Shown piece by piece: positions 3,001 through 64,000 of a DNA stretch of 64,000 bases. A model generated the notes under the pieces. It was not told where the DNA came from. It was given only the letters and a program-made list of their open reading frames with translations, and ran no database searches. The stretch is from NCBI GenBank assembly GCA_965644295.1, contig CBFFRP010000399.1, forward strand, positions 124,001 to 188,000, in the 5' to 3' direction. The number at the start of each line of letters is the position of its first letter. Positions within the stretch are counted from its first letter, which is position 1. Source of the DNA: Paraphysomonas bandaiensis (Eukaryota; Protista; Chrysophyceae). A program made the position numbers and the translations under genes.

Positions 3001-5297
3001 CGTTGCTCAATACGGGCCAAAGTTTGGATAGTAACATCGGCCTCTTCAGCAGTGGCTCCGACAGTTTTGTTGTGAATATGAAGATATCCTTGCGAGCCAA
3101 TCTGGTGCTGTACATTCTTCCCTACCAATACTTTAAAATCTAAATTATCGTAACTATCAACTGGCTTTCCCGTTGTAACTGCCCCACTCTTTAGACGACG
3201 AGTTCGTCGCCCACTACTAGCAGCATTGCTTTCAGCGGAAGGAGTTCGCGTTAAAGGGAGTGATTTTATCTTAGCATTAGATGTACACTTCGGTCCAGGA
3301 GAAGGCGATGCTTCTGATCGGAAAGTTACAGCAGCGTCTCCAGGTTTGGCAAAGTCGAACGACTCCAGAAACGGGCTAGTATCGGTGGCTGCAGTGGGGG
3401 TCTTTGTCCCGGTTTCGTTGCCCTCCAGCTCCGTTTCAATAGCATCACCAGTATCAGTATTTTCACTGACACCTGTCGCTATGCGCCTTGTCTCAGCGGC
3501 AGCCATACTGACCGTAAGCATCATTTCTTCATCGGATTTTACGCGTGCATTAGCCTTGAGATTCTCACAGCGTATCAAGTCGAGTTGATGATCCACGGTA
3601 ACCATACGGTTTCCCGTCCTTGAAAGCTCCGCAAATCTGCGTTTAAAACCAGCACTTCCGTCTTCCACTCCAGAGTCTGGTTGTATAAGTTCATCCACGA
3701 CCCCACCTAAAGTATTTCGCAATTACAAGCAATATAAACGGTTTCCCATATTAGCTTACCAGTTCGCTTGTACATTCGCTCCGAAATTGTCTCACCAGTC
3801 CCCTCTTGAACAAGAGGTGCATAGCAGTTGTTAGCAAGAATATCCAGTTCGGGTATCTCTTCTAACGAGTGACGAAATATTGTCCAACCGTTGACGTTCG
3901 AAAATTTACGTGCGTGACATGCGCGACCATTCTCCAAATATCTACCATTGACCTCTCCTAAGCTACAGCCAGTTACGGTCACTTTCTGTACAGTGGTCTG
4001 GACTTTCTGGCCTTTCAACGTCATAATGACAATCGCATCGCTCATGGAAGTAGTAAGGGTATCATTCTTTGCGCGTACCAGTGTCTTATCTGTCATTTCA
4101 TTTCCTGCACGCGACACAAGCAAAGTTAACGACGTGATAATAATCGATGTTCTCTATACCATGCTCTTCTCGTTGGTAATAATCCATGTCGTCCCCTGCA
4201 TCTGCAGATCCGTCTCTTGCAGCCTGCATGTAATCGTCTAAAATGATTCGCTTGCCGATATACGTCCATCCATTATCCGGAGGAGATGACGACTGCGTAA
4301 ATTGCCCGAACAGGAGGTGAGTAATATTTCCTTCTGCCGAGAGTCTTCCGAGGATCCAGCCGTATACCATACTGATCTCTTCTCCTGCCATGTTTATTCT
4401 CGTTTCATTCATCGCTGTTATGTCCACAGAGTCATCGAAGCTCGTTGACCCTAACGTACAATGTGGCTGCTGCCGGTCCAAGATACCTAACGACATGGCT
4501 GCACTCATGTCCGGATATTTGCGAGCCATCACTTCTTGACTATGCTTGAGCTGTGCTTCCGCATGCTCCAAATCCTCCTTTTCCACAGCTACCTGGGCCT
4601 GAAGTGCTCGGATCTTGTTATGCATCATCAGAAGCCAGTCGAAATTGTCGTCCTTGCGGCTACGTTCTATCTCTACAGAGTACGCACCAATTGCCGCCTC
4701 TTGATCATTGATGGACTCATTTAGTTCCTGGACACGGAGCTTCGTGTCCAAACACTTCTGATATAAACTCAACCGGTCAGACATCTGCTCTACATAGCGT
4801 TTTCGCTTTTTCAGGGTCATTTTATGCGCCTTCGACACTGGAGGCAGGACGACATTCCCTACTCGCATGGTTTCGTATGTTTTCATCGACTGGGAGTTTT
4901 TGACTGTTTCAGCAGCGTCGAAATACATCTTTCCCTCAAGCTCCGCATCTTGCATCTGCTCCTTCGCCACATTGCGCATGATGTGATCTCCGCGACGATA
5001 ACGCTCCATGAGGGCCTCGTATTCAGAGTCTATTACCTCATTATGAGCTTTCTCAAATTCTTTGGCTAGGAGGAGCTCTGGGTCCAGAGATGCTGTCATA
5101 ACACGTGCCTGTTGGAGGGATTCATGACGGGCAGTCGACATCTCCCGCTTATGGGTGACTCTGTTATTCATTCCTGTTGTTTTTGGTCCAAAGTCACGCG
5201 ATTCTCGGGCAATTTTCGGACTAAGAGAGAAGTCATCGGCGAACTCCTTTTCAAGTAGAGAACGTCTTAAGTCCTTCCGAAATGTGTAAGATGTCAT
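1..5297 (-). CDS. Very large (>1,700 aa, 3'-truncated by window) uncharacterised protein with coiled coils and an IQ motif; exons 5297-4160, 4104-3760, 3706-<1
   Basis: ATG at 5297 (MTSYTF). GT-AG introns 4159-4105 and 3759-3707 join the 414-aa and 138-aa ORFs in frame to a stop-free reading frame running from 3706 to the window edge (hand-translated). IQ-like AIDVQRVGRGHIVRR at ~960-1005. Confidence 0.8.
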
Positions 5298-5675
5298 GAT
5301 TATAATGTAATAACAAAGAATCACATATGATATAATAAACACATCACTATTTCATAATATATCAATATCATATATGCCAATCACGGAAACTAATCAATGG
5401 CAGAGCATGTATTTCTTGATACAGTGTAGCTACCACTATTTAAAGTATATTTAAATAGATAAGAATAAATGAGATTACTCTATGAGTTGAGTTGGTTATA
5501 TCTATAATCAACTACAATAGTGTAATTTTATATTAAGGAGGGATTCAACATGTATGAGGTCGAGATGTACACTGCTGTGATGTAGTGATAGATATGCATA
5601 CATATACTGCTGTATACAGCAGGACCATATCAATGCAATGCGATTGGAGAAAGTCATATATAAGGTCACTTCATA

Positions 5676-5866
5676 GTTAAACACTCACAAGGATAGTACT
5701 CATCATCAGCAGACCTCGGAGATCAGTTATACAGCTATGTGTGGCTAAATCTCACTGTAGTCCACAGTATACAGCAATATATTCCCCCCCCAGCCTAACC
5801 AGACAATGTAACTGACAATACGGTCTGCTGCTGATGAGGATAATTATTCTTGTGAGCAGTGTTAAC
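5676..5866. repeat. Imperfect long inverted repeat (fold-back / MITE-like)
   Basis: Left arm ..CTCACAAGGATAGTACTCATCATCAGCAGACC..TCAGTTA pairs with right arm TAACTGA..GGTCTGCTGCTGATGAGGATAATTATTCTTGTGAG; the core matches at 16 of 17 positions. Confidence 0.6.
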
Positions 5867-5957
5867 AACAATAATTTAAATCTATTCAGCAGAGGTTCAT
5901 ATTTATTAGTGGTATATATACTGTCCCCGTTAGTTAACGAAAGAAGATTCTTGAAAG

Positions 5958-6789
5958 ATGGACGCTTATCAAGCTCAGATGATGGAAAGGGTGGGTGATG
6001 GAATTCTGGCGGTTGCTGAAATGGAGGTAAGCGAATACAGCCGCTTACCGAGTCATTTCACTCATTATTTTTATGAATAACAGGAAAAGAAACTCGATGC
6101 ACAAATAAAAGGGTTGGAACAGATGGATGAAGATGATTTTGAAGCTCTACGACAGCGAAGACGGCAACAGCTGCAGCAGAAAATGAGACAAGAACAAGAC
6201 TGGAAACAACTGGGACATGGAAGGTATTGACACGTTATTTTCTTAGTCATTTTATAATATACATTTTTATAGATATTTGGAGTTGACAGATCCCAAGGAG
6301 TTCTTTAATGCAGCAAAGAAATCGTCGAGGATGGTTGTGCACTTTTACCGCGGGGTCACCCCTCGTTGTGAGATAGTGGATGCGCATTTTGAAAAACTCG
6401 CTCCCACTCATTTGGAAACTAGATTTGTTAAAATTAATGCCGAAAAGAGCCCATTTTTAGTAGAAAGACTCGGCATTATTCTACTCCCTACCATCGTACT
6501 CATTAAAGACGGAAAAACTCAGCACTCACTTCGAGGATTTGATGAACTCGGCGGCACTGATGACTTCAGCACAGATGATATGGCTTACGTTCTCTCCACC
6601 CATGGAGTGCTCAACTTTGATATGGATAGGTAGGGTAATGTTAGACATGTATGTGATAGCTTCTCACATTCTGTTTACAGGTCAGATATGATAGCGGCGA
6701 ATGCGGCCAAGTCTGGACTTAACCATGTTGGGATATCACAGATTCGTAGCTCAAGCTACTATAGTCTATCAGACGATGAAGATCTTTAG
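5958..6789 (+). CDS. TXNDC9: Thioredoxin domain-containing protein 9 / phosducin-like protein 3 (4 exons)
   Basis: MDAYQAQ... DFEALRQRRRQQL..W.QLGHG; VVHFY, RCEIVDAHFEKLAPTHLETRFVKINAEKSPFLVERL, GFDELGGTDDFST; acidic C-terminus SDDEDL*. Confidence 0.92.
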
Positions 6790-38180: not shown

Positions 38181-39170
38181 CTAATACAGCTGGCGGTAGT
38201 ACTGTGTGATAGTTTCTACCGACATCAGTATAATCATCGCATGGGGCGCACATCGACCGTAGTACGCTCCGAACCCAGTCCAAAAAGCAAGTAGGCCCTC
38301 CTAAACAAGTGAATTACGAACAATACACACATATATATGAGTTTTAACCTTTCTGAGTATTTGTGAAGCACAGTCAATTATGCCTTTGTACTTGGTCCCA
38401 TCTTGTAGCCTTGATTTCATGAGGTCAAATGGCAAAGAAAACCACGCAGCGGTAAATCCTGCAATCATAGATGATCCAATCCTGGTTGACATCTGAGGTT
38501 TGCTAGGGTCAGGATCATTCAATATGCCAGCCACAACCTCCTTGGCCTAAGTAAACAGGGTTTAAAAATTACTCTGAGCAGCAAGGAACAACGTAACCTG
38601 GTCATAGCATGACATCATGCCAACGTTCATTGCCATTCCACGCAAAATATTAGGTAGAAGCCCCGAATAAAGACGCGCAGCACCTTCCTCCTTTGCAATC
38701 CGCGTGAGAGCATTGAATACATGCGTATAGTTACGTCGACTCTCTACAGGTTTCATACTGTCTGCCTGCATGCGTACCAGAGCGACATCGAATGGAGTAC
38801 CTATACAAACTGCAATAGAACCAGACGCCATACCACTTGCAGCTTTCGTCAAAAACGATAATGGTTTTCCATCATTAGCAGCAGTCAAGTGGTCAGATAT
38901 GGTGCGGTGGAGACCTATACGGGCAGTCCCATATATAGCCTGTCTCATAAGAGCTGCTGATAATCCAGCATAGACAGATGTCACCCCTTCCTCTTTAACC
39001 ATCTTTGCAATCATTCCTATAGCATTTGGCTTCTTTGTTCCCTCTGGATTGAGTGTAGCAAATAATTGAAGACGTACTTTAGCTAGATCAATTGGATGGA
39101 TGCAAGATGATGCCAGACAGGCTGCCAACCCCCCGCAAACAAATGGTTCTAATGTAGATAATATAGGCAT
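38181..39170 (-). CDS. Mitochondrial carrier, 2-oxoglutarate/malate or di/tricarboxylate subfamily (3 exons)
   Basis: Three PxDxxKxR signatures (HPIDLAKVR, TPFDVALVRMQAD, LPFDLMKSR); GLSAALMRQAIYGTARIG; YYGRCAPHAM. Confidence 0.93.
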
Positions 39171-39911: not shown

Positions 39912-42900
39912 ATGTCGAGTTTTGTATTATTCATACTCTCATATCTCACTATCAGTGTATATTCTACACAAGATATATTCAATCCATCTATTGGTGAATT
40001 AGTATCAGATGCAGAGCATCGAGTGTCTATTGTTCGACAAGATGAGGATTGTCCGGACCCTCTTAGCTGTTGGCTAGAGAGTTTAACGTTTAAGATCCCA
40101 GATGTTTGCTTTATGGTTGAAAATGTTGAGTGTTGCATAACAGATTTTGTGTGCACTGGAATTGAAATTTCGGGCATAGATTCCAGTTACATATACCCGA
40201 CAACGCTGTCTATGGAGCTCGAGGGACTCGGAACTCCCTGCAAAGGAGAGTGGAGTTATGGTAAATTCGGTGGCAGTATATCAGCGGTTATCTCCAATAC
40301 AGATATTGCGACAACGACAGTAGTAGGAAAAGAAGATATCTATCCGGTTTCTTTGGAGTTTACCACCTGCACTGTTCCTAGCATAGATATCGAGCTAAAA
40401 TTTAGTGGAGGTCTTGTGGGGGTAATATTGCAACTCATTTCCAATAAAGTGGAAGAGGGATTGGAGAAGGCTGTATACACTGTCGTATGTGAGGTTGGAG
40501 AGCCCCTCATTGCAAATAAAACTACTGAAGCTTTGGTGCACACAATTGACCCTGCCCTAGCCGAGATGGTATCACATGGCCCCACCCCACCACCAGAACT
40601 CCCTGCGAACACATACATTGATTGGAGTACCTCCTTACCTGGTCTCATGGAGAATATTGAGGAAAAGCATGCAAACGATTACCTGAACAAGTTGGTTGAC
40701 TCAATTACGAATGGAACTGGTTCCTTTCATATTGATCTTCACAACACGTCTCTCACGTTTCCTGTTGTTGACCCTACTTCTGGCCCGCTAGGCAATATAA
40801 CTCTGACACTGCATTACCTCGATATTTCAGGTCTAGACTCGTTTTATGATATCTCCCTGTTGACTCCGTCTCCACCCTCTCCGTCCTATTCCCCGTATTC
40901 TGTGTGGTCTGCATTCTCTTTACACTCCTTCAGTATTTCTCTCGGCGTTACTGTGGACGTGGTTCTTGATCAGGGAGCACTCAGCGGTGGAGAGCTGAGG
41001 GAGACGTTTGCTCTTGACCTCGTTCTGTCCAACAGCACAATAGGAGTGGACCTGTTACTGCCTGTAAACATTGAGAGACTAGGGGAACTGTATCTGGATC
41101 AGATTGCCGATCTTTCTTGTTTACTTTCCACGGCCGATTACCTAAGCGTTACATCTCTCATTCTGGACACTCACATAGATAGTATGACTCTGGTGCAGAA
41201 AGATGCTACAGAAGACTCCCTCGAGAAAGATATTGATGATCTCATTAATAATATTGTCGAATTAGGCGTGGAAGGTTTTCCGGAGTTGCTGACAGACCTT
41301 ATATCGGGAGTTGCTCAAGGACCTGTGAAGTCATTGTTAAACAATAAACTGTCCGAGTTGCTAGTGTCTGCAGGAGACAATTGCATTCCACATAAGGAGA
41401 CAGATGATGATGAGTCTGACTGGATTGTATGGTCTGATAGCATTGTTGTGCAGGGGTTGGACTACCTTCTGAACAGTATGATTGGGCCAAGTGGTGTGAA
41501 TAGCATCGTCGATGCTGCTACCGATGGTACAGGTTCAGTCACAGTTCCCCTCTCTGCTGCTGATTTTGCTCTCACTGTTTTTGGTTTGGACTCCTTCTTC
41601 GATTTCACGATCCTAAAACCCTCATCGGACCCAAACAGTCCGTACACCTTGGATTCATCTGTGGGGCTGGGTTACTGTGAGGGACAGGATAGAACCCAAA
41701 TCTGTACACCTGTGGGCATATCTCTTGTGAGTGACTCGGATGCAGCACAGAGCCCGTCCAGTGCAAGTCTCACCGCCAGTTTCTTTAATTTCATGTTTTC
41801 CACGTCTATCCTCACGAAATTTGATCTTAATGCCGTTAAAGAGCTTCGTGTGGCTGATTTGTTCATCTTCAGTGGAAACCACTCGGGATGCTTTTTATCG
41901 TCATTTGATGAGATAGCGATAGAGTCCCTTGATATGAGTATCACGCAAGCGGAGCTGACAAAAGGGCCGTTGGTGTCTAAAGACATCACCAGTGGTGTGG
42001 AGCAGTTGTTGAATAAAATCACAGGAGAGGAGTCTATCGCGGCCATCAATGCTGCGTTGGTCAATTTGATAGCGGAGTCTGCAGAAGCATGTGAATCTGG
42101 TTCGTGGCCCCCTCTTCCGGGCGATGACGACAGTCCATCGCCTGCTGATGACTGCGACGGCCCTGTGCAATGTGCGCTCAACAGTATTGTAATTGGACCT
42201 TTGGATGACCTCTGTTTTGATATAAAGGATAGTGAACTCGAAATATGTATTAAGGCCTTTAGCTGCTATGATATTGACTTGGTAGGGTTGGAGTCTGGGA
42301 ATCCCGACCCTCAGACGATTCTCCTTGGGGTCGAGGAGTTTGCAATAACCTGTGGGGCTGATTGGAACATCTCCGCCTCCTTGTCTAAAGACGACGCCTC
42401 AAATGTTGGTGGACACTCGCTATCGTACGAAGGGTCTGTCAGCATTGCGATGACTGACTTTACAGGGTCAGTGGAAGCTGCCTTTGGAGCCAGCAGTGTG
42501 TCGGAGGAGTATCCCCCTATGCCGGCGTCGGTGAAACTGCAAGAATGTAAGACGAGTGGGACGCAATTTGATATTAAATTCGCTGGTGGTGTATTGGGAA
42601 CAATCCTGGATAAAGCAGTAGCTCCTCCTTTGGAAGATGCGTTGGAGAGTGCTGTTTACTGGGCTTTGTGCGATCTGTTGAACCCTTTTCTCAGCAGGGT
42701 GATGACAAGAGTTCTTAAGACTCGTGTGGATCCCGCTATTGAGGATGTAATTGACATGCGAGCCCCTCCTGCACCAGTTGTTATGCCAGGCTACCTTAAC
42801 TGGAATGAAACAATTCTGAACACTGTCCACAACATTATATCAGGAATTCAAGTCAATGAAGGGAAGGTAATCCAATGCATGCTGGACGCAGAGAACCCCC

Positions 42901-45900
42901 CAGTTGATGGGTACAACATCAATACACTGATCGATTTCATGACAGACGGATCTGGAGAGTTTGTGATTAGCATCGACTCCACTGTACCTATCGGTAGCGC
43001 AACTCTTACTTTTGAGACATTGACGATATCTGGACTTGACACATTCGGCGACATATTTTTATTGGATCCTTCGCCTGATTCTGGAGTTACGTTGTCTTCA
43101 TCAATCGAGCTGGCCTCTATGGATCTCCAACTGGCAGTTCTCCTTGAAGAAGCCGAGGAGGGCTATAAACAAGAGGCAGTTGTCGACCTTCGCCTGTCAA
43201 ATGCTACTCTAGCTTTCGATATGGTCGCTGCTCTACGGCTCTCAATTCTGAATAACTTGTACAGTGATCAGATCTTGCATCTACCTTGCATCATGTCGGC
43301 ACTAGATGAGCTATATATCTCCTCGCTTGTGCTCTCAATGAATGTTGAGAATCTATCTGTGCAGCAGGTCTCTGGTGGAAATGCAACATCACTTGAACTG
43401 GAAACCGCGGAGCTGGTCGACAGTTTGTTTCGTTTGTTGCTGTCTGGATATCCTGAAATGGTTACAGAAATGATTGAGGGCATCGCTCAGGGGCCTGTGA
43501 AGGAGAAAATCAATGAGAAGTTGCTTGCCATGATGCAGGCATATGACCTTAACAACGCTGACGCGTGTCCCCATCACGGGAACTATAGTGGCGTAGACTG
43601 GATCGTCTGGAGTGAAAGTACCCTCATAGAGAAGGTCGACACACTGTTGAATACCCTTCTTGGGTCTGATGGCGTCAACAAGTTAATGAATTGCATCACT
43701 GACGGAACTGGCAATGTGGTTGTACAAATTCCCACAGATGCCCCTCTCTTAGCTGGTTGGAAAATTACTCTCGGTGGCTTGAATTCTTTTTCAGACTTCG
43801 CATTGGTGTATCCTGTGGAGGGTGAGCCCTATGATCTTGGCAACTTGCTGGGGTTGGGCGATTGTAATTCTGCAAGTGACTGCAATTCTTTTCTGCTTGC
43901 GATGGAGGGTGATCACATGGACCGGCATATAAGCATCAAGCTAACGATGGATAATCTTTTGCTATATCTGGACATGCTCACGGAGGTGGATATGACGGAG
44001 TTTATGAATTTACAGTGGGCAGAGTTTCATACTCAAGGGTGTATGATGACCACTGTAGACGCACTCTCTATATACGACCTAGGTCTTGGGGTGTCTGACG
44101 TCGAGTTGTATTTCAACAATGGTGCTGGAGAAGTAAATCTTACTGCTATGGTGAAGTCACTTTTAGACAAACTGACTGAACCAGAAACTCTCGCCACTTT
44201 CAATGGAAAAATTACAGAGAGCTTGAGCACATCCGATGAAGTGTGTGCGGGGACGTACGAACCCACTGTAGACGGATCGAACTCTTCTGACTCCCACAAT
44301 GCTTGGCGATGGCAGCTTGCTGTACTCATATCTGGGTGCATTGTTGCACTTTTTCTGTTGGTCTGGATATACTTTAACTACGGTGTGGCCGGTATGAGCA
44401 AGACCTGTATGGTCGATTCCAAGGGCGTTCCATATGACGGTGTTGGGGAAGAAGCGGCGAGTCAATATTCTGCGTGGGATTGGGAAGAGGAGGCCTACCC
44501 TGTGGGGCAAAATGTGTGTCTCAGTAATGCGTGGATAGAGTCTTGGCTTGGGTGGCTTTTCGGTTATGAGGAGGGTGAATTTGTATATGATGCTCTCATT
44601 GCTCAGGACAGTATCTATGCATCTGTCCGTATCCTCATTCCGCTAGCCATACTCGGCAATATTGCTCTCTTTATATCCGGAAATATTGCTGTTGGCGCCA
44701 CTGTCCTGGCTGAGGTGGATGTAGGCAACCAGGTTATCAAGCCAGATCCCATATTTGAATTCGGTCTCGGTAACACCGTCAGAGATATGTAAGTATATAT
44801 GTGATGTTTTTTCGTCCCTTTATTTTGTGTTAGGTGGGATGCCAAAGTATACCCGCTATCAATGTTGATTGCTTTTTTCTCTGGAGCATGGCCATATATT
44901 AAGCTCGTGGTCATGCTTTTCTCGTGGGTACTGCCGACATCGTTGCTTCCTCTTCCCAGGCGCGACAGTGCTCTTATATGGCTGGATATCCTAGGAAAGT
45001 GGTCACTCATTGATACGTACGTTATGGTTCTGATGGTACGAGCATTGTGTATGCTGCTTCTCTTCTAATTTTTTTGTAGATGGTCGCTTTTCAGTTTACA
45101 CTCGAAGTTGCACCAGGGATAAAGGTCATAGTTATTGTTGAGCCCAATTGGGGTTTCTATGCTTTCCTACTTGCAACGATGTGCAGCTTAGGACTCGGAC
45201 ATCTTGTTTTAGCATGTCACAGACTTATCGCAGAGACTAAAATTCCGCCATATGAACTTAAGACTGAATCTTTGATGAATCACACATTTACCACGGAGCT
45301 TCGTTGCAGTGCCACGGGCTCATCTTTTTCCACTGTGGATTCTGGTGATGATGCTTCAAAGAAGTACGTATGGAAGACTCATCAGGTGTCGGTAACCACG
45401 GCGGGTAAAGTAACGATGGTCGTTGTGCTGCTATTTTTAGCCCTGTCTGTAATTGCGGGGACTTTCGTGAAGACTTTCAATTTTGAATTTAAGGGCCTCA
45501 CGGGGTACTTAATGGGTGATGGAGCTGTCGATCCCTACAGCTTGGTAACCGTTGGCACTACACTCCCAAGCGCATCTGGATCACCCCACGATTTTGGTGT
45601 TCGATGGATTCAAGCTGCTTACTTTGCTTTCGGTCTTGGTATGCCCCTTGCTTTCTGTGCCGCCCTCCTCGCTCTGTGGGTGACTCCGTTGACCTTGAAA
45701 TTCCAGAAGGGATTCGTTGTCCTCACAGAAGTGTTAAACGCTTGGAACGCACTGGATGTGTTTGTTGTGTCCATAATAGCAGCATTGGTACGTATTGACG
45801 TTGTGGTGTTGTATACTGATCTCTTACGTAATTCTTTCAGTTGGAGATTCAACAATTCGCTGCCTTTTTGGTGGGTGACAACTGTGACACTATCAATGAG

Positions 45901-46532
45901 ATCCTAGAAGAATATATGGACGATGAGTTAGACGGTGACGATAAGTGCTTCGATGTGGTGGCTACTCTGAAACCTGTAAGTGTAGTGGAAACTCATGTGT
46001 GTAAATATCTTATATATTAATGCATTAGCAATCATGGATGTTGTACCTGGCTGCATCCTGTCTTGTCATAGTCGGGCTTCCAATGATGGGTCTCTGCCAT
46101 AACGTGGTTGCTGAACGTATGGATGAGTATGAGAGCAGGAAGGAGGACGCCGATATGGGATCCTGTCATGAGAGGAGCACGTCAATGTCAGCATCTCGCG
46201 TGCCACGGCTGTTTTCCTCTGCAGAAGAAAGAGCTGCACTTGAGGCTGAAGAAAGCGGGTATAATGCACTATCTGGTGGCGAAAGTCCTGCATATTCTGA
46301 AGGCAGAGACCGCATACTGACTGTAGACTTGGAACCCACAGATCCTGCATTGGAGGAGGATAGAGGGGCTCTTAGTTCCTCGGCTCTGGACTTATCTGGA
46401 CGCAATAGAGCGTCCGAGGACTTGGCCTCGGAGGATGATGGAGAGGATAAAACACCCTGGACTAAGTGTGTGATGTCTACTTTTATCCACTCATGCCATA
46501 GGGTGGGACTTGTCTCATTCGGTGACGAATAA
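39912..46532 (+). CDS. ~2,140-aa membrane protein: signal peptide, duplicated luminal array of BPI/LBP(TULIP)-like and GLD[ST]F repeats, TM helix, two PqiA/LetA-like membrane repeats; exons 39912-44788, 44834-45035, 45080-45787, 45841-45975, 46029-46532
   Basis: PqiA-like signatures TVRDMW..LIAFFSGAWPYIKL..WLDILGKWSLIDTYV and VLNAWNALDVFVVSIIAAL; BPI-like C..DIELKFSGGLVGVILQLISNKVEEGLEKAVYTVVC. Spliced length 6426 nt stays in frame. Confidence 0.85.
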
Positions 46533-47555
46533 ACCATGTGCGTGTTTAGTGTCGAAGCAGTTTCCCTGTTAAATTACCGTTGTTTTATCAATATCACGGT
46601 CATCACGGGTCAAAAGTGAATGGTGTATAATTGTGTGATAGTGACATCTGCGTACTCGCTTTCGTTTGTTGCAGTTTGCGAAAGGTTTATTGCTATTGTC
46701 CCTATCATTCGATTGTTGTTGAGGTGCGATTAACTTTATCATGTTCTAGTTATAATAAGTATACGGTTTCGAGATGTCTGTAATTTCTTATCACTAAGAG
46801 CTACGTAATCACAGTGTCGCTATAGAGCTAGTTATATATTACAGTGTGCGTAATGGTTGACAATATGATATTGCGGATGCTTACTGCCTTGGTCCTGCTG
46901 ATATTCTGTAGCCTATTTTCAGTTATTGTGTAGTCCGTGCTCTGTGCGTCCTATTCTTTAATCATGATTGCATTCTGAATTCTGATACTTCATGTTGGAA
47001 AGAAAAATATCAAGCAGTAAATTTTCCTTCTCATGTGCAATAGATATACTATACTGGATACAGGATACTGGTAATAATTAATTAAAGAAGAGTTGTGATC
47101 TAAAAGCTAAAAGGTAGATGTTATCTATTAGACATTCTTCTCACCTTCCCACGACGCACCGCGTTGTATTATATCTTTCCATGTTACTTGGTGCTTTCTT
47201 GTATATTGTATACAACTTGCAATTCAATTTATTGTTACGCAACCCTGTATACTACGCAATTACTGCAGTTCTAAACATATATATAAAGATTAAAATAATT
47301 ATTCTGCGTAAGAGGTGAAGCTATTGCAGATTGCAACTCATATGAAAGCACAATAGCGGATAGCAGAGATATGAGAAGCATCGTCAACAAGAAATTGATA
47401 TAATTTATTACAACTGCCAGAGATCAATATTGATATAATTATTGTATATTAAGAACCGCCTCGAAAGCTTATATATCCGATAACAAATCAGAGGCATGTG
47501 TAACAGATGAGGAATTCTTTATAAGAACAGTTACGTCGACTACCCATTTATCCAT

Positions 47556-61672: not shown

Positions 61673-64000
61673 CTACAAGTCTTCAATAAAAACTAAACCC
61701 GCACTGCAGAGCACCCTCAAAACTCTAAGTCGAAACTCTGTCGAAACCGAACGAGTACTGCTACTTCCTTCTGAAAGAAATGATCCACGCTCGCATAAAG
61801 TCGTTATTTTCTCCTGGGCTGGAGTGTCACCGCTACTCCAAACAACATATTCTTCTTCAACAGTGTTTGCAGCAAACAGCTGAGTGATAGAGGCTGACAT
61901 TGACGTACTCCTTTTGCGACGAGATTCCATATCTTCAGCGTTCACCTTGCACTCATACTCGCTCATGCGCTCGGCCACCACATTATGACACAGACTCATC
62001 ATCGGAAGCCCCACCATAACTAACACTGCCGCGGCAGTACATACCGCCCAGGTACTCTAAATATTACGTTACACAACAACGTCACATATAGCATGCACAT
62101 ACCGTCTTCATCGTAGCAACCACGTCAAAGCATTTATCGTCACCATGTAGCTCCTCGTCCATATACTCCTTCAGAATTTTATTGATTGCATCACAATCAT
62201 CGCCAACCAAAAACTTTGCAAACTGTCTTATCTCCAGCATCGCGGCAATAACCGACAAGACGAACACGTCTAGAGCATTCCACGCATTTAGCATCTCCGC
62301 AACAACGATCATTCCTTTCTGAAAGGTCAACGACAGCGGGGTGCACCACAAAAAGAGCAGTGCAACTAAAAATGCAATTGGCATAGCGAGTCCGAATAGA
62401 AAGTATGCCAACTGAATAAACCGCACCCCGAAATTATGGGGGATGCCAGACGCTGCAGGTAAGTTCGACCCTACACTGATCAAACTATACGAATCTGTCG
62501 GGTCACTCATCAAGTATCCCGTTAGCCCGCGGAATTCAAACTGAATTGTGTTCAATATAGCACCAGTCAGCACAAGAGCAATGCCAATCACAATAACCGA
62601 ACCAACAGTCAGCTTCCCTGCATTTGTGAAACCAACTTTCTTGTAAATAGACGAACTGCTAGAGTCGGCACCATCTTCACTGGTCACAATCTCAACCGTA
62701 TGTATGTGGTTCATGAGTGCCACTTTCATGGTGTCGTCATTCTCGAGTGGGGTTGGACTCTCTGACACTATTCTGTGGCACGCTAGTGCGAAATGGCCGA
62801 TTGCCAAGCTCCCCATTGTTGCCAGCAGAAACGCATAAAAGCTCCAGTGGGGAACCACAGTCATTGTCAATTTTATGCCAGGCGCAATAGAAAAATGGAA
62901 GTGAAAAGCAACCATCTAGTAAAGAAGGAGTGAAACAATATACACACACTGCACTCTAACTTACCATTAGAACCATAACAAAAGTATCGACTAGAGACCA
63001 CTTTCCGAGTATGTCTAGCCAAATGAGAACATTGTCTCGAGTAGGGAGAGACACAACTGATGTAGGAACAAACCACATAACAAGCATCGCAAAGAGCTTA
63101 ATGAATGGCCATGCCCCAGTAAAGAATGCAATGATAACAGCCAGGAAATACGTGCCGGCTTCCCACCTACGCAACATACACATGACTTGACAGAAAAATG
63201 TATACTTTTATGCTTACATCTCTCTCACTGTGTTGCCCAGTCCAAATTCAAAAACGGGATCCGGGGTTATCACTTGGTTTCCCATGTCGATCTCAACCAT
63301 CACAGAAGACGCCGGATGCATATCTGACACCATGAATAGGAAAAATATTGATACAATAATAATCGGCACTGAAATCCGGACAAAGAGAGAAAGTGAATCC
63401 TGGGCAACGAGTGCATCATATCCGCATGTCCCTTCGTCATACCCCATCATAATATTGACATATTTGTTTATCCACGCATTGCTCATCACTTTGCATTCTC
63501 CACTCGTCGCAGTCTCCACTGTATCGATATCCACTGACCCAGATACCGGGACATAGTTCATCTTCATATCATCCACATGTGTAGGAATTCTGAAATTATA
63601 AAACGTCCGGACAAGTAGGTATACAGCTACAACACATACAACAATAAGGGTGGCCATTTTCCATTGCCAGGAAAAGCTGAACTTGTTATCTTTCGTACTG
63701 CTGCCATCAGTGGACGGCTGATATGTGCCATCACACATATCTTTCGAGGAAACCAGTCTCGAACTGATTTTATTATTTATTGCCTCGATCGCTTCCGGCG
63801 ATTGCAAGGAGTCTAAGATTTTCTCTACTAATTGCAATATGTCTACCTCAGAAGTGCCTTCTATGAAATAAAAGTTTACACCACTGACAGACAAATCTAG
63901 TCCAGCGATTGACATGTGGTCAATTGCCGACGCTACACAGCCATCCGTATGATAGTCTGCGAGCTTCATATTATGTATGGAGGTTAAGTCCATTTCCATC
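61673..64000 (-). CDS. Paralog of the TULIP-like/PqiA-like membrane protein, 5'-truncated by window; exons >64000-63218, 63166-62965, 62915-62103, 62056-61673
   Basis: DPVFEFGLGNTVREM|W..IIAFFTGAWPFIKL..WLDILGKWSLVDTFV; MLNAWNALDVFVLSVIAAMLEI; DDKCFDVVAT; colinear with the 39912-46532 protein. Confidence 0.88.

Follow-up and report, generated by a model that had tools for sequence, protein, structure and literature searches.

A predicted TULIP array fused to a LetA/PqiA-like membrane module in Paraphysomonas bandaiensis: a probable long-armed member of the TUPAL class

Can a single eukaryotic protein carry both the fold of the BPI/LBP/CETP (TULIP) lipid carriers and the membrane module of bacterial LetA and PqiA, and what might such a protein do? 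The question is raised by a gene at positions 39912 to 46532 (plus strand) of a 64,000-nt stretch of Paraphysomonas bandaiensis DNA (GenBank assembly GCA_965644295.1, contig CBFFRP010000399.1, positions 124,001 to 188,000), the whole of which is called the window here. A preliminary description, made from the letters of the window, had proposed that TULIP tubes replace the MCE tunnel of the bacterial systems and are fused to a PqiA/LetA-type membrane part in one chain of about 2,140 aa. As set out below, the gene is real and expressed, both parts are carried by one spliced mRNA, and the product is probably a lipid transfer protein of the recently named TUPAL class.

Gene structure and the TULIP-type ectodomain

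Five exons totalling 6,426 nt, separated by GT..AG introns read from the sequence, encode a protein of 2,141 aa, in line with the length first proposed. An open reading frame (ORF) at 39912-44792 opens the gene, and a GT donor at 44789 closes exon 1 (39912..44788; 1,625 codons plus 2 nt), as does the RNA junction 44788>44834. Exons 2 (44834-45035), 3 (45080-45787), 4 (45841-45975) and 5 (46029-46532) follow on the same strand, interrupted by introns of 45 nt (44789..44833, phase 2), 44 nt (45036..45079), 53 nt (45788..45840) and 53 nt (45976..46028). RNA contigs from four libraries, each from a different study, were aligned to 43000-46600, and all four predicted introns, and exactly those, are spliced out in them. 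Two contigs, X1 (4,131 nt) and X5 (2,747 nt, with poly-A), extend from the ectodomain as far as the 3' end and cross all junctions at an identity of at least 99%. Exon 1 by itself holds the signal peptide, the whole ectodomain, a first single-pass transmembrane (TM) helix termed TM0, a cytoplasmic linker, TM1 and the start of the first LetA-like beta-hairpin, and its single reading frame joins ectodomain, TM0 and TM1; the fusion is therefore independent of the splicing model. For the homology searches the exons were taken individually, and the fold of the membrane module was taken from a homologue, P0003.

The chain begins with a signal-peptide-like segment of about 19 aa (39912..39968), read from the sequence, with a hydrophobic core and small residues ahead of TQD; hydrophobic leaders also stand at the N-termini of homologues. 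The ectodomain that follows (aa 20-1462) has an isoelectric point (pI) of 4.05, with 215 acidic versus 55 basic residues, and contains 14 N-x-S/T sequons and 31 Cys, the latter in a pattern repeated between its two units. The acidic pI, the Cys pattern and the sequons fit a luminal or extracellular site. Both the signal peptide and the acidic, Cys-containing ectodomain had been recognized in the preliminary description. Two tandem copies of a unit of about 700 aa make up the ectodomain (aa 1-730 versus 731-1460; 28% identity, E 2e-87), and within the unit the second and third modules, B and B', are themselves related (BLASTP, 26% identity, E 6e-9). Its layout is (A-B-B')x2, giving six TULIP-type modules over about 1,440 residues.

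All six modules lie on the plus strand. Module A of unit 1 (40050..40604, aa 47-231) resembles the N-terminal barrel of BPI and LBP and carries a Cys153/Cys193 pair, an assignment drawn from PF01273, VIA fold comparison, an alignment of Cys residues with LBP and hidden Markov model (HMM) segmentation. The TULIP-like module B (40629..41393, aa 240-494) was placed by its helix/sheet/helix order in an AlphaFold2 (AF2) model and by fold matches to LBP, BPI and CETP, and module B' (41421..42113, aa 504-734), a diverged copy of B, by BLASTP to B and by a helix/sheet/helix pattern at a predicted local distance difference test score (pLDDT) above 90. In unit 2, module A (42153..42782, aa 748-957) has a Cys879/Cys920 pair and was delimited by the comparison of the two units and by the HMM for A (151.6 bits). 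Unit comparison and HMM segmentation likewise delimit module B (42804..43577, aa 965-1222) and module B' (43599..44264, aa 1230-1451), which ends about 12 residues short of TM0.

Folding of the ectodomain as TULIP barrels, which the preliminary description had suggested from a BPI/LBP-like Cys pair, is supported by sequence families and structure models. PF01273 matches aa 116-195 in module A (E 2.2e-8, 34.4 bits versus a cut-off of 28.8), and the two Cys bounding the DIELKFSGG...VVC segment align to two Cys of LBP in a phmmer alignment. PF02886, also named in the preliminary description, had no match among the exon peptides at E<=1 in the Pfam search, and single-sequence phmmer with exon 1 against the PDB gave a weak LBP match only (E 0.12). 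The AF2 model of unit 1 (window protein aa 40-745, 66-sequence alignment; pLDDT 90.7, predicted template modelling score (pTM) 0.75) has three successive modules with long beta-strands between long helices. Its top Foldseek matches in the PDB are LBP (1.5e-11), BPI (3e-11) and CETP (3e-9) over about 500 aligned columns, and all 28 matches at E<=1e-3 belong to the TULIP family, including also Der f 7, JHBP, Takeout, BPIFA1 and OrfX/P47.

Pairwise comparison with VIA agrees with these matches. Module A aligns with the N-barrel of BPI (1bp1, residues 26-192) at Z 10.8, with a root-mean-square deviation (rmsd) of 4.3 A over 154 aa, and modules A and B together (model 19-448) align with LBP (4m4d, residues 55-450) at Z 11.2. 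The same two modules also align to CETP 29-439, and the rmsd of the LBP and CETP pairings is large (22-23 A); the geometry between the barrels therefore differs from that of LBP and CETP. A shape search of the ESM Atlas with unit 1 led to LBP and JHBP clusters at low TM scores (0.24-0.28 by query), and residues 197-669 were paired with a PF02886 cluster at scores of 0.26-0.33; these matches are in keeping with the others but strengthen them little.

The association of this ectodomain with a membrane module extends well beyond the window. An exhaustive search with unit 1 returned 381 clusters (50% identity) at E<=1e-3, with 205 at E<=1e-10, and 159 proteins sharing the unit were segmented with HMMs for the membrane module and for each of A, B and B'. 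The membrane module is present in 105 of these, the remainder being mostly fragments, and the two parts are thereby shown to co-occur near-obligately. Segmentation gave 22 proteins of the form A-B-module, about 49 of the form A-B-B'-module and nine, this gene counted in, of the form (A-B-B')x2-module, together with a few scattered forms of four or five TULIP modules, including Balamuthia protein P0066. Two or three barrels are typical of relatives, and six is the longest array type among the proteins segmented. A transcript of Paraphysomonas imperforata falls in the cluster of P0003.

The LetA/PqiA-like membrane part

Hydropathy places TM0 and then eight more helices across exons 1-5; the preliminary description had read one TM helix beginning WRWQLAVL, now placed at 44304-44399, and then a multi-pass module with two motif repeats. 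TM0 (44301..44399; hydropathy 2.66) is conserved in homologues and corresponds to helix 3-33 of the P0003 model. It leads into an acidic cytoplasmic linker of 70 aa (44400..44609), which takes the position of the N-terminal zinc ribbon (ZnR) of LetA and is without CxxC. LetA-like module 1 (TM1-TM4, 44610..45220) is spread over exons 1-3 and has two extracytoplasmic beta-hairpins; it was placed by PF04403 on exon 2 and by homologue tiling. A cytoplasmic connector (45221..45382) occupies the place of LetA ZnR-C, and LetA-like module 2 (TM5-TM8, 45383..46115), spread over exons 3-5 and placed by PF04403 on exon 3, has a conserved Cys pair in its TM7-TM8 loop. The cytoplasmic tail with the stop codon (46116..46532) is 138 aa long, acidic and Ser-rich (pI 4.5), and its last residues resemble the C-termini of the homologues P0003 and P0004.

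The proposed match to PqiA and LetA has held at the levels of family, profile and fold. PF04403 was found on exon 2 (E 0.015) and on exon 3 (E 9e-5, 22.8 bits, just under the cut-off of 23.8), and full-length homologues, along which the exon peptides tile colinearly, clear that cut-off at 38-42 bits in two stretches. A profile of the module built from eight sequences and compared with PDB sequences found E. coli LetA (YebS, 9n8w) at E 1.4e-5, with positions 96-157 on the LetA C-terminal transmembrane domain (TMD-C). The module of the homologue (P0003:1540-2085) was modelled with AF2 from a 52-sequence alignment (pLDDT 89, pTM 0.88), and the model consists of TM0, a disordered linker and eight TM helices, with four beta-hairpins, one after each of TM1, TM3, TM5 and TM7. 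LetA is its sole Foldseek match at E<=1e-3 (4.7e-6), with TARPs and claudins next, a pattern of fold matches that has been published for LetA itself (PMC13017536). By VIA, LetA 9n8w_A is the only chain at Z>=8 (Z 12.9 over 317 residues, model 96-538), the next reaching 7.7. The models thus support reading the C-terminal part as a LetA/PqiA-like double four-TM module, a pseudodimer.

Residues of functional interest were compared by HMM alignment to 9n8w_A, after correction of the chain numbering, which is offset by 18 from that of PMC13017536. The module-1 motif GKWSLIDTY (44994..45020) is the counterpart of LetA 361-GRWSM-psi-D-psi-F-369, and the module-2 motif NAWNALDVF (45737..45763) is a degenerate second copy. 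Module 1 keeps the equivalents of LetA S321, K328, S364 and D367, the first two being the Ser and Lys of exon 2. LetA T402 falls outside the alignment, and module 2 aligns with TMD-N. By sequence, the canonical motif thus lies in the first module here and in the second (TMD-C) in LetA. Module 1 lies nearest the array and is probably the active half, because it holds the canonical motif together with the majority of the polar-network residues.

In agreement with the preliminary description, which could see no zinc ribbons, there is no CxxC in any exon, nor at the zinc-ribbon positions of homologues, which agrees with the eukaryotic LetA-like proteins lacking ZnR in PMC13017536. In the P0003 model the connector consists of two strands (292-299 and 322-329) with a disordered loop between them, on the cytoplasmic side, and this Cys-free hairpin at the ZnR-C position may be a zinc-less remnant. 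Two Cys encoded in exon 4 (45880-45950; C478 and C499) are nearly invariant in the alignment and lie in the extracytoplasmic TM7-TM8 loop, which is very acidic (12 D/E in 33 aa); they probably form a disulfide beside the array. Cys pairs and sequons are confined to the predicted extracytoplasmic side. The count of one plus eight TM helices and the signal-like leader predict that the array lies on the same, extracytoplasmic side as the four beta-hairpins, as the preliminary description had argued from the extra TM helix.

Published relatives, proposed mechanism and alternative explanations

The preliminary description had asked for the novelty of the fusion to be checked; the fusion is already published, and the locus is a long-armed further example, not a new type of machine. 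BPI/CETP proteins from protists and amoebae that end in a PqiA domain were mentioned in 2017 (Wong and Levine, PMC5507252), and LetA-like proteins without ZnR and fused to extracytoplasmic beta-rich domains were described from protists in the 2026 LetA paper (PMC13017536). In September 2026 the TULIP-and-PqiA fusions were named TUPAL and surveyed, together with functional data from Plasmodium (bioRxiv 10.64898/2026.09.11.750981). According to that preprint, knockout of PfTUPA causes membranes to accumulate in the digestive vacuole, and the TULIP domain is luminal.

TUPAL proteins, as portrayed in the preprint (bioRxiv 10.64898/2026.09.11.750981), share with the window protein a single chain with a ZnR-less LetA/PqiA-like double four-TM module and extracytoplasmic BPI-like TULIP domains. 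The N-terminal layout given there as '2xBPI + PqiA' has its counterpart here in modules A and B together with the membrane part. PfTUPA, by the same source, has a single divergent ApiTULIP domain at its C-terminus, whereas the window protein has six modules derived by duplication of an A-B-B' unit, and the main text of the preprint gives one or two BPI-like domains and no third module of the B' type. The proteins of PMC5507252 have the same outline architecture and prompted the same inference, that TULIP and PqiA parts act on the same lipid; that paper gives them one sentence and says nothing of array length, fold or expression. E. coli LetA/PqiA (9n8w) likewise pairs two four-TM domains of tetraspanin-like form into a pseudodimer, carries beta-sheets on the extracytoplasmic side and has a GRWSM-x-D-x-F motif, but it has zinc ribbons (CXXC-Xn-CXXC) before each TM domain, which the window protein lacks, and it has no counterpart of the extra TM0. 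LetA works with an MCE partner (LetB/PqiB), in whose place the window protein has a covalent TULIP array. BPI, LBP and CETP (PF01273, PF02886; 1bp1, 4m4d, 2obd) are matched by module A on the BPI N-barrel and by A and B along the whole of LBP and CETP, but they are soluble secreted proteins of about 350-500 aa with two modules, compared with 2,141 aa, nine TM helices, six modules and an acidic ectodomain here.

Relative to the TUPAL text as drawn on here, what is new is the B' module, the duplication to six modules, the variation in array length within one family, the reversed position of the motif and a pair of paralogues with a putative conversion tract. As a discovery in itself the locus is incremental. 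The proposal that TUPALs, built from a bacterial-type transporter and TULIP domains, form a class of lipid transfer proteins widespread among eukaryotes is very recent, and the Plasmodium member is the only one studied; the locus adds an expressed, well-modelled example from a free-living marine protist. Within one homologous family the number of barrels varies from A-B to (A-B-B')x2, and the LetA transport motif persists without zinc ribbons or MCE partners. If array length reflects the distance bridged, the family would offer a natural series for comparing shuttle and bridge mechanisms of TULIP proteins.

By analogy with these systems, we infer that the protein transfers lipids, and its assignment to the TUPAL class is likely. 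The barrels of the array would bind lipid acyl chains, and through the array lipids would pass from a source on the extracytoplasmic side to the LetA-like module, with its pocket and its beta-sheet 'slide'. This module would insert or flip them in the host membrane, or the whole reaction would run in reverse. The TULIP array would in this way fill the role of the bacterial MCE tunnels LetB and PqiB. The MCE domain PF02470 had no match in the 62.6-Mb draft assembly (669 contigs), while control genomes gave matches; a gap in a draft does not prove that the gene is missing, but the result accords with the replacement of the MCE tunnel put forward in the preliminary description.

The same draft assembly contains no match to the chlorophyll a/b-binding family (LHC, PF00504) or to PsbO (PF01716), and 15 matches, at no fewer than seven loci, to the silicon-transporter family. 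This gene content suggests that the host is a colourless, non-photosynthetic silicifying protist. A plastid-related (MCE/TGD-like) role for the protein was considered and set aside: MCE, LHC and PsbO are without matches, and the leader lacks a Phe at the predicted cleavage site.

As for where a TUPAL-class protein would act in such a cell, the membrane bounding a food vacuole or a lysosome is a tentative answer, falling somewhat short of an even chance; there, in a colourless phagotroph, the protein might salvage lipids from ingested membranes. Such salvage, which PfTUPA carries out in the Plasmodium digestive vacuole, is the most attractive role, provided that the host is a phagotroph. Relatives occur in Paraphysomonas, a phagotrophic chrysophyte, and in the amoeba Balamuthia, and these, like the gene content of the assembly, count in favour of the TUPAL-class explanation. 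Otherwise, the plasma membrane is the alternative.

Several observations weigh against lipid transfer by a TUPAL-class protein in a phagotroph. In module 2, Glu and Gln stand opposite LetA K178 and D181, and, judging from the exons, the zinc ribbons that are essential in LetA are absent. The membrane model is that of the homologue P0003 and not of the joined window protein, whose exons are 35-64% identical to P0002. Module B' is probably of TULIP fold, as suggested by homology to B and by the pattern of secondary structure in the model. Phagotrophy of the host is read solely from gene absences in an assembly of 669 contigs.

A bolder form of the lipid-transfer mechanism is unlikely. The six modules, joined in a row as the two barrels of BPI are, would form one continuous hydrophobic conduit a few tens of nm long, physically linking the vacuolar membrane, or the plasma membrane, with prey or with membranes inside the lumen; the number of barrels (2, 3, 4, 5 or 6) would be tuned to the gap, and the 'active' LetA module would have moved next to the array. 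If this were true, eukaryotes would have in this one chain an equivalent of the long LetAB tunnel.

Two explanations that assign the protein another purpose are each improbable. In one, the array is a surface receptor or defence molecule at the plasma membrane that binds lipopolysaccharide (LPS) and recognizes or permeabilizes Gram-negative prey or pathogens, the LetA-like part serving as an anchor or signalling scaffold. The best structural matches, LBP and BPI, do bind LPS, the signal peptide and the many sequons and Cys would suit a surface protein, and the LetA fold is akin to those of tetraspanins, TARPs and claudins, all of them scaffold proteins (PMC13017536). However, the LetA transport motif and polar-network residues are conserved over 52 divergent sequences, and a mere anchor needs none of them; moreover, members of the ectodomain family almost never occur without the membrane module. 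The LPS-binding tip of BPI is cationic, unlike the strongly acidic ectodomain here.

The other makes the protein an exporter: its LetA-like module takes lipids out of the host membrane, and the arm of six barrels carries them outward, to a structure such as the cell coat, the contents of scale-forming vesicles or a second membrane. In the bacterial model, LetA loads LetB with lipids, which thus leave the inner membrane (PMC13017536), silica-deposition compartments are probable given the many silicon transporters, and family members have arrays of two to six barrels, a variation that would suit adjustment to a distance. Yet the sole functional data from a eukaryote, those on PfTUPA, indicate uptake out of the lumen; no structure is known that could act as acceptor, and sequence by itself does not reveal which way lipids move.

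An artefact of the gene model, in which ectodomain and membrane module belong to separate genes or transcripts, has next to no probability, for although contigs in principle cannot prove a single molecule (nothing else was found in its favour), it is refuted by the one open frame of exon 1 through array, TM0 and TM1 and by spliced RNA contigs of four studies across every junction, and the complete architecture recurs in at least nine relatives, one of them a paralogue in this genome.

Paralogues and neighbouring genes

The paralogue lies about 15 kb downstream of the first gene, in tail-to-tail orientation, with the same five-exon structure and the same (A-B-B')x2 architecture. Its 3' half is in the window (61673..64000, minus strand), and its exon 1 runs past the window end, to about position 192014 of the contig (G000:C399); this exon (L010:2215-7014) is an ORF of 1,599 aa. 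It is 83% identical overall to that of the first gene, and the identity is a mosaic. A tract of about 3.4 kb (about 40300-43750 versus L010 about 3230-6680, inverted) has 97-100% DNA identity, with flanks at about 68%, and inside it RNA evidence cannot separate the two paralogues. The part of the membrane module encoded by exon 3 of the paralogue is only about 55% identical to that of the first gene. The near-identical tract suggests gene conversion between the inverted paralogues, with assembly collapse as the alternative.

A third PqiA/LetA-like gene is found elsewhere in the assembly (L008:667-2055, minus strand; G000:C182:313815-315203). It is a single ORF of 462 aa with no TULIP ectodomain, and its motifs are GKWSFVD and a degenerate second copy. 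Immediately upstream of the first gene, a neighbour on the minus strand (38301-39170) has, from its ORF translations, the look of a mitochondrial carrier-type gene with a short intron inside.

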